Assembly: GCA_039096225.1 (NCBI GenBank)
Contig: JBBPEB010000027.1
Location: forward strand, 248,001 to 312,000
Length of the DNA: 64,000 nucleotides
From: Blastocystis sp. Blastoise
Lineage: Eukaryota; Protista; Bigyra: Opalinata
Direction: 5' to 3'
Shown: positions 4,992-20,294 of the stretch, piece by piece
Position numbering within the stretch: the first letter of the stretch is position 1
Layout of the letters: each line of letters starts with the position of its first letter
Notes under the pieces: generated by a model
The model's database searches: none
What the model was told of the DNA's origin: nothing
What the model saw: the letters and a program-made list of their open reading frames with translations, nothing else
Position numbers and translations under genes: made by a program

Positions 4992-7900
4992 ATGAACGAC
5001 GATAATAACGAGCCAAATAAGGAATCCACTGTTGACAATGATGTATTTTCTTTTGTTTATTGCAAATCTATTTATGTTAGGATCATCTATATGAAGTTTG
5101 GTACTCAAATGTATATAATTTATACTTTTTATAATTGTATTTAGTATGCAAATCAAATTGCACATGGTCAGCCTTTAGATAATATTAGTGCATATATTCC
5201 TGAAGAACTTATTGAGAAATTTAATAAAATAAATAAGTTGAAACAGCAAACCATTTTGACAAAAAACGATCCAAAACAAAATAAAGCAGATCCTTATTCT
5301 TCTGTATTTATATATTGAATAATCAACAATAATCTCATTTAGTTTAATCAATATGCATGGAATAAATGCCCTTTTCTTCGACTTGTCAATGAGCTTTTCA
5401 AAATTAGTCTGCTTAACTCGATAAAAACAAAATATCCAGAGTATTTCTTTGTATATTTTTGAAACTATATATTATATATAGACTATATGATATTGGCATG
5501 TTTGGAATTCCTTCTATTTCTTCTTCATCATCATTGAATGGTAATTTTTTTTACATTTTTATTTATTTTTAATTTTTTTTTCAATTTAGATGCTATGACT
5601 AAAGAATATGATTCATTACTATTAGCTTTAAGGCAGTCAAAATATGAATATTCTGAAACAATAAACAGTAATAATAATAATATTGGTGATAAAAATAATG
5701 ATATTGGTGATAAAAGTAATACTATTGGTGATAAAAATAATACTATTGGTGATAAAAATAATAATATTGGTGATAAAAATAATAATATTGGTGATAATGA
5801 CAATAATAATAATAATAATAATATTGGTGATACTATTAATATTAGTGATGATAAAATTAATAATAATTCAATTAATACTACTACTAATAATAAAGATATA
5901 AATATTTCTTTTTCTGACACTCTATCAGATAATGATTCTCCAAATAATAATAATAATTTGGTTAATAATAATAATAATAATAATAATATAATTCTATCAA
6001 TAAATAACAGTAAACAAGTGTCTACTATCTCTTTAGAAGAAATAAAACAAGATAAGTCTTTGTTATTGAATTCAGTACATTCTTCACTAGATCCTATATC
6101 GTCTATTCCCGTGATTATTCCATCACTAGAACATTCTTCTAATCTTAATACATCAATATATTTTGATAAACATACTTCAGAGATCTCAACTACTTCAAAT
6201 TCATTAACATCAAATTCTCCACTCTCCTTCAAAATCCCTCCTTTTCCAATGGCGGGAAATTCATCATCTTCTTCCTCTACCGATTTCTGGAATGCATTCG
6301 AAGAACCTACATCTTCTTCGACTGGGAATAGTATTCCAAATCAAGATCTATTAGTGTCTAAAGACAATGATGATACAACTTCTCTATCTACTTTGGTTCC
6401 ATCACAATTAATAATAAATGAAGATAAATATATTGATATAAAACCTAATGAACAAATAGAAAAACAAACAAGTGATATGTCACAAGGTATAGATGATACC
6501 AGCTCTATATGTGAAGGAAAAGAAGAGAAGGATAATACTATTAAAGGTTTAGTAGATGAAGAAGATAATGACAGAGTTAAAAAGATTGAAAGTGCATGCA
6601 ATAGTATTACTCAAAATAATGATAATAAGAATATTAATATTATTATGAGTATGGGTAACAGTAATAATGATGATAATGATAATGATGATAATGATAATGA
6701 TGATATCAATGATAATGGTAATGATAACGATAATAATAAAAATGTTGTTTCTTCTAATACTATTCCTATAAAAAGTTCTCCTTATTCTTCTTCTTCTTCT
6801 TCTTCTCCTTGTCTTCATACAATAGAAACTCCTTCTCTTTCGTCTATTTCTTCTTTTATTTCTCCTTCTCCTCTTCTTCCTTCTATAGCTACTCCTTCTC
6901 CTGATATTACTACATCTTCACCACAAATATACTTATCAGAAGAAGAAGATGATGATAATGAAAATATTAATGAAAATAATAAGGGTAATATTAATGAAAA
7001 CAATAATGATAATATTAATGAAAACAATAATGATAATATTAATGATAATATTAATGAAAATATTGATACTATTAATGGTAATAATAATGAAAACAATAAT
7101 GTTAATGAAAACAATAATGAGAATAAAGGTAATACTAATATTAGTATTGTTTCTATTAATGACAGTAACAATACTATTGATATTGATAATACTGATAATA
7201 ATACTATTACTACTAATGTAAACTTGTCTATAAATAATAATTCTTCTACTAATAAGAGTACTACTGATATATCACATATATCTCCTCCTTCTTCTTCTTC
7301 TATAGATATGAATACAAATTGTTTTATTCTTTCAGAAGATGAGGAATCCGATTCTTTTTCTTCTAGTGATGATCTATATTCATCTAATTATGAACAGAAT
7401 CAATCTACATCTATTTATACAAATAATCCTTATTTCTCTCTATCTACACATTCATATACTAAACAAAAGCATACTAATATAGAAAATCATACATCTACTT
7501 CTGCTTCTATTACTACTATTAATAATAATAAAGATGATAATAATAATAAAGATAATGATAATAATAATAATAATAATAATAATAATAATGATAATAATAA
7601 TAAAGATGATGATAATAATAATAATAATAATAATAATGGTATTTCTTCTTCAATACACACATCAAAAGATATTGTCCAATCAAATCAAGAGATACCACGT
7701 AAACCCTCTATTCCCACCAAATCTACATGGGATACAAACTGGAATTCATGGTGTGACGAGAAAAGTAAAATTCCCACGGGAACTGAAGATGAAACCCTGG
7801 ATTTTTGTATATTTATATTATTATTTTTTAAATATTTCTTTTATTCATTAGTATTCTTTTATTCTCTCTCTCTCTATATATATATTCTTATGTCTCTATA

Positions 7901-19900: not shown

Positions 19901-20294
19901 GGATTCTATATAGTGACGCGTCGAGGGATCCACAAAACTATGCTGCATCAGATCTATGTGGATTTAATGTATATAGTATTATTATTATTATTATTATTAA
20001 TATTATTATTATTATTATTATTATTATTATTATTATTATTATTATTATATAAATAATTATAATTATAATTATAATTATAAATATTTATTCTATAAACAAT
20101 TTATACTAATATAATCTCTACTATAGGTTCATGGCACGTGCTATTTTATATTATCCAATCATATTGGAGATTTCTTTTTGCCTTTTTCGGCATCTAATTG
20201 GAATAATATATTTAATTTAAATATACCTGCTACTACTACTGTTCTTTATAAGAAATTCAAAGTAATACCATTTGTTAAAGCTAATCAAAACTAA
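4992..20294 (+). CDS. Giant Dicer-like/Maelstrom/CS-domain fusion protein (~4522 aa): platform-PAZ-RNase IIIa-RNase IIIb(degenerate)-Maelstrom DEDDh-low complexity-CS-CS
   Basis: Exons 4992-5042, 5081-5110, 5145-5303, 5343-5440, 5482-5540, 5590-7806, 7904-9102, 9307-9570, 9880-10074, 10220-18090, 18204-18244, 18296-18833, 19067-19223, 19351-19518, 19615-19968, 20127-20294. All junctions are GT..AG with matching phase, and the total of 13569 nt is divisible by 3. Motifs: PAZ YFYTVTNIDYDKSP...TYKQH...DDQPLL...YLIPSLC; RNase III FTHSSY...DQLEKVGDAIMEY...KADLFESFLAMLY; Maelstrom FFVADFE...PCEVGITAFSFKRGIVDHYHAYIFP...HCALEDA. Confidence 0.8.
5682..5800 (+). repeat. 21-bp coding tandem repeat (IGDKNNx)n
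   Basis: ATTGGTGATAAAAATAAT units, about 5-6 copies, inside the Dicer-like gene. Confidence 0.85.
13040..13265 (+). repeat. (AAT)n coding microsatellite, poly-Asn
   Basis: Uninterrupted AAT run within ORF 10262-18091. Confidence 0.95.
14054..14192 (+). repeat. 12-bp coding tandem repeat AATTCTATAGAT, (NSID)n
   Basis: About 11 copies, one of them a variant (AATCCTGTAGAT). Confidence 0.9.
15829..16183 (+). repeat. (AAT)n coding microsatellite, poly-Asn with an ISD interruption
   Basis: Long AAT run within ORF 10262-18091. Confidence 0.95.
18091..18203 (+). repeat. Intron made entirely of a 10-bp TATATTATTA minisatellite
   Basis: GT + (ATATTATTAT)n + AG. Its GT overlaps the apparent TAG stop of the long ORF. 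Confidence 0.8.

Follow-up and report, generated by a model that had tools for sequence, protein, structure and literature searches.

In Trypanosoma brucei, RIF4 turns duplex siRNA into single strands for AGO1, directly downstream of dicing (PMC3359990), and it was noted as a homolog of Maelstrom (MAEL) by Zhang et al. (2008). EhMael of Entamoeba histolytica (EHI_192630) carries DEDD and ECHC motifs and is a Mg/Mn-dependent exoribonuclease in vitro; metazoan MAEL proteins have lost most DEDD residues, with only the first Asp left in Bombyx, and are inactive RNA binders (PMC4408791). The activity of EhMael, together with the position of RIF4 downstream of Dicer, strengthens the core claim of a preliminary description of the locus analysed here, that RNase III domains share one exon with a Maelstrom-type nuclease. 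Neurospora QIP, ERI-1 and other DEDDh nucleases of RNAi are likewise 3′–5′ exonucleases, acting on siRNA duplexes or passenger strands; they belong to other DEDDh branches, not to MAEL, and no fusion of any of them to RNase III was described in the literature that we found. On the side of the cutting enzymes, Dictyostelium DrnA and DrnB have tandem RNase III domains and no helicase, as does Giardia Dicer (2FFL).

Here we analyse a locus of Blastocystis sp. Blastoise (GCA_039096225.1, contig JBBPEB010000027.1, 248,001–312,000 of the forward strand; this 64,000-nt stretch is the window referred to below) that encodes RNase III and MAEL domains on one protein. Our sequence, structure and literature searches found no other case of this combination, and known organisms use separate proteins for the two silencing steps. 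RIF4, to which the nuclease here is likened by description, as a protist MAEL-type DEDDh 3′–5′ exonuclease, is separate from DCL1 and DCL2, whereas the nuclease studied here forms one chain with an RNase III pair. EhMael is similar in being a protist MAEL with DEDD residues, but no RNase III module has been reported for it. Metazoan Maelstrom works in the piRNA pathway with an HMG box as partner and with its DEDD residues lost, whereas the domain here retains the DEDDh residues and has RNase III as its partner. The minimal Dicers of Giardia and Dictyostelium share with this protein the two tandem RNase III domains and the lack of a helicase; unlike them, it is several times longer, has a second RNase III domain that lacks at least two catalytic acids and a MAEL nuclease added, and has a putative PAZ domain, by motif likeness only.

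The gene, proposed to span positions 4992–20294 of the window, is very large and chiefly of low complexity, in a host that is an AT-rich protist; all features given below lie on the + strand. At its centre, 2,623 codons (10220–18091) form one uninterrupted frame that closes with a TAG at 18089–18091 and holds the second half of RNase IIIa, RNase IIIb and Maelstrom, so that the earlier claim that these three share one exon holds. An altered stop-codon code was ruled out, none of the three stop codon types occurring within the 2,623 codons, and a bacterial or viral origin was set aside because the locus has spliceosomal-type introns. Upstream, small 5′ exons proposed to run from an ATG at 4993 (4993–5540) are uncertain: the joints 5440/5482 and 5540/5590 are in frame, whereas 5100/5145 is out of phase, and these exons gave no Pfam match. 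They are followed by a long low-complexity exon rich in Asn, Ser and Asp (5590–7806, within a 793-aa ORF at 5538–7919), which has three Trp motifs at 7728–7751, a phase-1 GT donor at 7807 that pairs with an acceptor at 7903, and no Pfam family. GT-AG boundaries and frame are kept at the checked joints 7806/7904, 9102/9307, 9570/9880 and 10074/10220 and at four within the CS part. The single spliced coding sequence of ~4522 aa that had been proposed is thus borne out at the checked joints and in the exon sum (about 4,520 aa), but not at 5100/5145, and splicing of the long exon onto the CS exons is possible but weak. Sequencing reads (the only run that contains the locus, type not stated) hold 26% of the words of the locus and gave contigs internal to exons only, which counts neither for nor against splicing or expression; two 20-nt joints in AT repeats in the read assembly were judged spurious. 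Pfam scans of whole ORFs were empty because low complexity masks the domains, which emerged from piecewise scans.

Evidence for the first RNase III domain is strongest in the exon that encodes its N-terminal half (9880–10074). Aligned by hhalign to a bacterial RNase III alignment, this exon matched with a probability of 96% (E 2.9e-9); it also matched TIGR02191 in NCBIfam (E 2.2e-5), and all 19 of its PDB sequence matches are RNase III, Drosha or Dicer, Giardia Dicer and Drosha included. The Glu and Asp of the signature are intact. The C-terminal half is represented by a motif at 10283–10351, in the long exon, where the catalytic Asp and Glu match the invariant pair of RNase III (hhalign P 0.0011), and RNase IIIa as a whole keeps the complete catalytic set of E, D, D and E. 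A single-sequence AlphaFold2 model of the RNase III exon (pLDDT 34) was unfit for fold comparison.

The second domain, RNase IIIb, is catalytically degenerate (10577–10927). It matches PF00636 with E 0.0036 over profile positions 2–58 and RNase III by hhalign with P 0.00093 across 97 columns, and BLASTP places it in register with RNase IIIa. Scanned alone as a 136-aa piece, it lost the Pfam match, and it gave no NCBIfam match and no relevant PDB sequence match. Two or more of the four catalytic acids are missing: an Arg stands in place of the signature Asp, and the last Glu position aligns to Ala or Ile. The RNase IIIb claimed earlier is present in this degenerate form. Overall, the tandem arrangement of Dicer and Dicer-like enzymes is present, the IIIb match being weak (P about 1e-3); of the four acids expected in both RNase III domains of a Dicer-like enzyme, RNase IIIa has all and RNase IIIb does not. 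Since RNase IIIb has lost catalytic acids, the enzyme may cut one strand only.

The MAEL domain lies in the same exon (11927–12720) and begins ~330 residues beyond the RNase III tandem. Two scans matched it to PF13017 above the cut-off of 22 bits, scoring 24.8 and 26.5 bits, with coverage confined to the N-terminal half of the profile. A search of 1.84 billion representative proteins gave six matches to it, all six of which are MAEL proteins with PF13017. A structural model built from an alignment of MAEL proteins (mean pLDDT 58) had Bombyx MAEL or SIWI-Maelstrom complexes at PDB ranks 1–7, above RNase T and DnaQ, with the metazoan Maelstrom structures of Bombyx (5AF0) and Drosophila (4YBG) as its best matches; 3′hExo/ERI-1 appeared among the lower ones. 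Rows 1–2 in the ESM Atlas were Maelstrom homologs, and motifs of the core strands and a final H/N-C-A-L segment are common to metazoan Maelstrom and the domain here. The MAEL piece gave no relevant PDB sequence match and no NCBIfam match. By its profile match, nearest relatives and model, the domain is MAEL and not another DEDDh branch, as had been claimed for ~11900–12690, and it is the only MAEL domain detected in the genome.

The DEDDh set is complete, with five residues distributed over a D-x-E in the first strand, a G-F-D ExoII-like motif and an H-x4-D in the last helix (H-C-A-L-E-D); the ExoII motif was assigned by direct reading, MAFFT having misplaced it beside an insert. For the ECHC zinc motif (E137, C290, H293 and C302 in Bombyx), the Glu and the final Cys both align, in columns that are invariant or nearly so. 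The Cys-His pair is spaced C-x4-H here instead of C-x2-H and is followed by an insert that is rich in Asn and about 30 residues long. Compared with EhMael, the domain here has this changed spacing and carries two inserts, one of about 40 residues and one of about 30. By analogy with EhMael and TbRIF4, to which evidence of this kind is confined, the domain is predicted to be a 3′–5′ exoribonuclease, with an inferred role in Argonaute loading.

These residues also bear on whether the protein is an enzyme at all. It could instead be a largely non-catalytic scaffold, in which the RNase III pair and MAEL serve as RNA-binding modules of a long, disordered, condensate-forming protein. Such a protein would be consistent with a dead RNase IIIb, with the altered spacing of the MAEL zinc motif, with Asn/Ser-rich low complexity over more than 70% of the protein and with the inactive, RNA-binding MAEL of metazoans (PMC4408791). 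However, RNase IIIa retains every one of its catalytic acids, and MAEL retains all five DEDDh residues, which are mostly lost in metazoan MAEL, and we consider a scaffold very unlikely.

Upstream of the RNase III pair, the preliminary description had placed a Dicer platform and an intron-split PAZ domain. The first exon concerned (7904–9102, in an ORF at 7909–9219) would encode the platform block together with the beginning of PAZ; it had no Pfam match and no relevant PDB sequence match, and it is absent from the PAZ profile matches of the genome. The second (9307–9570) would encode the end of PAZ and the connector, and gave no Pfam or PDB sequence match, its likeness being at the motif level only. 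The peptides quoted for the platform block are indeed present, but matches to the platform and PAZ were not obtained when the exons were searched one by one. The label of a Dicer core, which rests on this motif-level likeness, is accordingly weaker than stated. No helicase or dsRBD was verified in the gene in Pfam scans. Further downstream, the ordered islands of the long exon at 13340–18067 had no family match. Near the end of that exon, at 17471–17692, nine Trp motifs occur within 74 residues and hold 9 of the 14 Trp of the exon, and this cluster is a candidate Argonaute-binding (GW-like) region.

A different substrate would also suit such a domain set. Yeast Rnt1 makes a cut that is followed by trimming by Rex or exosome nucleases, and the protein here might similarly mature non-coding RNAs: its RNase III would cleave precursors of rRNA, snoRNA or snRNA in the manner of Rnt1 or Drosha, and the tethered DEDDh nuclease would then trim them 3′–5′. 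The degenerate RNase IIIb would be in keeping with such a function, as would the failure of exon-by-exon Pfam searches to recognise PAZ, helicase or dsRBD. Conversely, the two MAEL proteins for which we found a tested role in vivo, metazoan Maelstrom and TbRIF4, serve small-RNA pathways, the Trp cluster fits Argonaute docking, and there is the motif-level likeness to PAZ; taken together, we regard maturation of non-coding RNA as unlikely. The reading that we favour, and hold to be rather probable, is that this one large gene combines a Dicer/Drosha-style RNase III tandem with a MAEL DEDDh nuclease, which would couple cleavage of double-stranded RNA to 3′–5′ strand removal or trimming for Argonaute.

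The CS part of the gene raises the separate matter of where the RNase III-MAEL protein ends. The exon at 18296–18833 contains a first CS domain, CS1 (core about 18514–18831), and possibly its own start, an ATG at 18382. All 30 of its feature matches in the ESM Atlas are CS clusters, the best with a score of 0.92, and hhalign against the genome's own CS domains gave P 0.001. CS1 resembles the p23/CS Hsp90 co-chaperones, yet its match to Pfam CS (PF04969; 15.6 bits, E 0.033) is under the cut-off of 21.3, and it had no PDB sequence match and no NCBIfam match. It is probably a genuine CS domain. Four further exons (19067–19223, 19351–19518, 19615–19968 and 20127–20294, the last with a TAA stop) are joined in phase with GT-AG introns. 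They would encode a second CS domain, CS2, in three exons, and a C-terminal part; searched exon by exon, none of these exons in 19067–20294 had a family match, and CS2 had no relevant PDB sequence match. Of the tandem CS domains claimed earlier, CS1 is thus supported but CS2 is not. Three clear CS genes are present elsewhere in the genome.

Between the long exon and the CS exons lies a gap (18092–18295) made up of an 11-copy 10-bp AT repeat at 18094–18202, a possible 28-nt micro-exon at 18217–18244 and a 51-nt GT-AG intron at 18245–18295. Whether the gap belongs to one gene or separates two is about evenly balanced. With two genes, RNase III-MAEL would end at the TAG at 18089–18091, and the CS protein would be a separate downstream gene with a promoter in the TATA-rich repeat, a 5′-UTR intron at 18245–18295 and a start at the ATG at 18382. 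An AATAAA at 18070–18075 and the self-consistency of the CS exons, with their own ATG and TAA, agree with this arrangement. So do the splice sites: whichever phase-0 donor is used (18062 or 18068), the best-formed acceptor (18203/18204) puts a TGA directly after the joint, and the sole in-frame path, which would run through the 28-nt micro-exon, needs an acceptor ending in AAAG at 18216 and the donor GTAATA, in a locus where, of the other sites read, 9 of 10 donors start with GTAT and 9 of 9 acceptors end with TAG. However, the gap separating the putative genes spans merely 290 bp, and two islands upstream of ATG 18382 have exon-like composition and are each open in the CS frame. Base composition also argues against two genes, since the GC content of the repeat (0.9%) resembles that of the gene's introns (5–16%) and not that of the flanking intergenic DNA (21–24%), and the intron at 18835–19003 is likewise filled with copies of this 10-bp unit. 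The CS exons could equally well be part of the RNase III-MAEL polypeptide, by way of the one weak in-frame splice path.

The preliminary description had considered the architecture unreported, and searches of sequences, structures and the literature returned no other fusion of RNase III with MAEL. Similarly, no orthologue of the fusion was found among representative proteins or in word-based or metagenome searches. Word-based searches found no homologue for residues 1–830 of the long ORF, where Asn words swamped the matches, or for the RNase III exon; with the MAEL alignment they returned only one sequence that was already in the alignment, and a metagenome locus scan with the same alignment gave no match. 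The genome holds no paralogue of the RNase III exon. A marginal Pfam RNase III site on another contig, the sole such match in the genome, was inspected and dropped. Loci with PAZ and Piwi domains are present in the genome by profile search, in answer to the earlier suggestion that Argonaute/Piwi be looked for.

In the mechanism that we propose, the RNase III module would bind and cut double-stranded RNA, and the tethered MAEL would digest the cut product 3′–5′, by which the passenger strand is removed or 3′ ends are trimmed. An Argonaute/Piwi protein encoded in the genome would then receive the single-stranded guide. The Trp cluster may dock Argonaute, and the CS (p23-like) domain encoded downstream, if spliced on, may add a link to Hsp90. 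p23 has a role in Argonaute loading. Trypanosomes carry out the same steps with separate proteins, DCL and then RIF4 (PMC3359990). A more speculative version, which we think improbable, is an enzyme that nicks, strips and loads: with RNase IIIa alone active, a single strand of a dsRNA or hairpin would be nicked, MAEL would digest the nicked strand from the new 3′ end, the Trp cluster would hold Argonaute and spliced-on CS domains would bring Hsp90. One polypeptide would thereby take double-stranded RNA to a loaded guide, with no free siRNA duplex in between.

Proteins that act together are often revealed by gene fusions such as this one. It has been proposed, so far on the basis of trypanosome RIF4 and of the Entamoeba protein assayed in vitro, that Maelstrom originally served to process Dicer products as a nuclease, and the fusion gives this idea independent genomic support; if the idea is true, the animal piRNA factor Maelstrom would be a later, inactive derivative. 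The gene also offers a natural single-chain system for the coupling of dicing to strand removal, and its dead RNase IIIb makes one ask if it might nick RNA instead of dicing it. Should the Trp cluster and the CS domains belong to the same protein, small-RNA production, Argonaute docking and chaperone-assisted loading would be physically linked in Blastocystis.

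The window has a GC content of about 23%, within a source genome of 33.3 Mb in 34 contigs, and the introns of this locus are short, very AT-rich and of the GT-AG type; long Asn/Ser runs are also present. The long exon at 10220-18091 (forward strand) extends for 2,623 codons from 10220 to a TAG at 18089-18091 with TAA, TAG and TGA all absent in between, and given the local DNA composition such a frame cannot be due to chance. As the preliminary description had proposed, this single frame encodes the C-terminal half of a first RNase III domain (IIIa), a second RNase III domain (IIIb) and a Maelstrom (MAEL) domain. 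The tandem RNase III pair and a MAEL domain whose catalytic residues are intact are carried on one exon, and at the level of the DNA the fusion of a Dicer-like RNase III to a Maelstrom-type nuclease is genuine. Another feature of the long exon is a 12-bp coding repeat at 14054-14194, nearly perfect with 96% matches over 11.8 copies, that is translated as an N-S-I-D tetrapeptide array.

For the proposed 16-exon gene (4992-20294), the reconstructed exon lengths give about 4,520 residues, in agreement with the earlier model, and the mid-gene joints of that model at 7806/7904, 9102/9307, 9570/9880 and 10074/10220 all have GT-AG borders and preserve the reading frame; the first of these is a 97-nt phase 1 intron linking a 793-aa low-complexity ORF with the next ORF. 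The small 5′ exons following the ATG at 4993 are less certain, as one attempted joint was out of phase. A single sequencing run, of unknown type, contained the locus; it yielded no true joints, and its four perfect contigs all lie within the long exon.

Family and homologue searches were performed exon by exon, each separately. The N-terminal half of IIIa (exon 9880-10074) matched A3, a profile of eight bacterial-type RNase III catalytic domains, with a probability of 96% (hhalign, E 2.9e-9), and TIGR02191 with an E-value of 2.2e-5; all 19 of its PDB sequence matches were Drosha, Dicer, Dicer-like or bacterial RNase III. This half has the signature Glu and Asp, and at the start of the long exon an Asp and a Glu of the C-terminal half align with the two invariant acids of the profile (P 0.0011). 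Since both halves keep their acids, IIIa has all four catalytic acids. Downstream, at about 10577-10927, IIIb is RNase III-like (Pfam E 0.0036; hhalign P 0.00093 over 97 columns, the whole domain), and BLASTP aligns it in register with IIIa. Support for IIIb is weaker than for IIIa, and the Pfam match was lost when the IIIb piece was scanned alone. In every alignment its signature Asp is replaced by Arg and its last Glu by a non-acidic residue, so that IIIb looks like a structural partner without cutting ability. Homologue searches found no relatives of the RNase III exon for an alignment, and a single-sequence AlphaFold2 model reached a pLDDT of 34.

Dicers usually have a dsRBD just after RNase IIIb. 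Directly after IIIb, at 11021-11062, lies a Cys/His-rich stretch (C-P-P-H-C-K-C-M-E-H-P-H), possibly a small zinc-binding element, which matched no family. The platform and PAZ exons, with the putative PAZ split by an intron, were recognised by no tool when searched exon by exon; at the level of motifs, their likeness to PAZ appears real to the eye. Of the proposed "Dicer core", what stands is an RNase III tandem in which one centre is live, preceded by a putative PAZ.

The MAEL domain at 11927-12720 matched PF13017 at 24.8 and 26.5 bits (Pfam curated cut-off 22), and nowhere else in the genome does such a match occur. When 1.84 billion representative proteins were searched exhaustively with phmmer, six weak matches were returned (E 2e-7 to 2e-4), every one a MAEL protein by Pfam: a metazoan HMG-MAEL protein, a metagenomic RRM-MAEL protein, a Rhizamoeba saxonica protein that is among the closest MAEL relatives, and three others from metagenomes, the two shortest of which (111 and 122 aa) are probable fragments. 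The two best ESM Atlas rows were Maelstrom homologs, and a language-model feature search with this stretch also returned Maelstrom. A model from a ten-sequence alignment was modest overall (pLDDT 58, pTM 0.62; core strands 70-93), and its seven best PDB matches were the Bombyx MAEL domain and SIWI-Maelstrom complexes, with RNase T, DnaQ and 3′hExo ranking lower. The DEDDh set is complete (D-x-E, a G-F-D motif, H-x4-D). In the ECHC zinc motif, the Glu and last Cys align; the Cys-His pair is differently spaced, and an Asn-rich insert comes after it.

The partners of MAEL given by Zhang et al. (2008; PMC2628886) are HMG, HDAC_interact and SR-25-like, with RNase III and RRM absent. Full-text literature searches found no description of MAEL joined to RNase III, and as far as these searches reach the fusion is undescribed. 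An RRM (PF00076) precedes the MAEL domain in the JGI metagenome protein P0001, which shares a 90% cluster with another JGI protein, P0007; the N-terminal extension of a R. saxonica transcript product (P0005) aligns with the P0001 RRM region, although Pfam reports no RRM in P0005. In ENA metagenome scaffolds (L011, 17-2367; L012, 1050-3400), two MAEL-domain ORFs of 366 and 275 aa stand in tandem on an environmental contig, with no RNase III family listed near them; MAEL duplication therefore occurs in another organism too.

"Tandem CS domains" had also been proposed. CS1, on the exon at 18296-18833, is probably a CS domain, judging from its ESM Atlas feature matches (30/30 CS), Pfam CS (E 0.033) and the source genome's own CS domains (hhalign P 0.001); CS2, within 19067-20294, found no support in exon-by-exon searches. 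The CS exons form a coherent set, all in phase, and the odds that they are spliced onto the long exon are about even. They could equally well encode a polypeptide separate from RNase III-MAEL: splicing from the long exon to the well-formed acceptor at 18203/18204 leads straight into a stop codon, and the sole in-frame path pairs the donor GTAATA (18068) with the acceptor AAAG (18216) and needs a micro-exon of 28 nt and an intron of 51 nt. However, the intervening gap measures only 290 bp, the AT repeat inside it resembles this gene's introns in composition and not the flanking intergenic DNA, and the repeat unit also fills a real intron 700 bp downstream. The repeat is a 10-bp minisatellite (unit TATTATATAT or a rotation), present as 10.9 perfect copies at 18094-18202, beyond the stop codon of the long ORF (GC 0.9%), and as 17.3 copies at 18835-19003, within an intron between CS exons (GC 7%).

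The long exon has 14 Trp residues, nine of which fall within 74 residues (17471-17692), in Ser, Asp, Asn or Glu contexts such as S-D-W, S-E-W, G-E-W and R-D-W. Three further Trp occur at 7728-7751, close to where the first long exon ends. Both clusters lie in otherwise Trp-free low complexity. The nine-Trp pattern recalls Argonaute-binding GW motifs, and both clusters are possible Argonaute hooks. The suggested genome check for Argonaute/Piwi and RdRP was borne out in its first part. At least two loci (C26:479993-482069 and C17:835499-836977) match both PAZ and Piwi, and the genome therefore has Argonaute proteins; a third PAZ match, on contig C23, is interrupted by numerous stop codons. No RdRP was matched in the genome, in a search without a positive control.

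Metazoan MAEL has lost its DEDD residues and is inactive, and Entamoeba MAEL, in which DEDD and ECHC motifs are both present, is a metal-dependent exoribonuclease (Chen et al., 2015; PMC4408791). In trypanosomes, RIF4, whose DEDDh residues had already been pointed out by Zhang et al. (2008) in their work on Maelstrom, is a 3′–5′ exonuclease preferring dsRNA that acts downstream of dicing and is required to convert duplex siRNA to the single-stranded form on AGO1 (Barnes et al., 2012; PMC3359990). In Blastocystis, the RNase III module would cut dsRNA, the tethered MAEL nuclease would then strip one strand or trim 3′ ends, and the product would pass to Argonaute. The proposed steps are those of the trypanosome DCL-RIF4 relay, here joined in one chain. 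Given the degenerate IIIb, the module may cut one strand only, which would point, speculatively, to a nick-then-strip route. The fusion agrees with known biology well enough to hint strongly at the function that Maelstrom had ancestrally.
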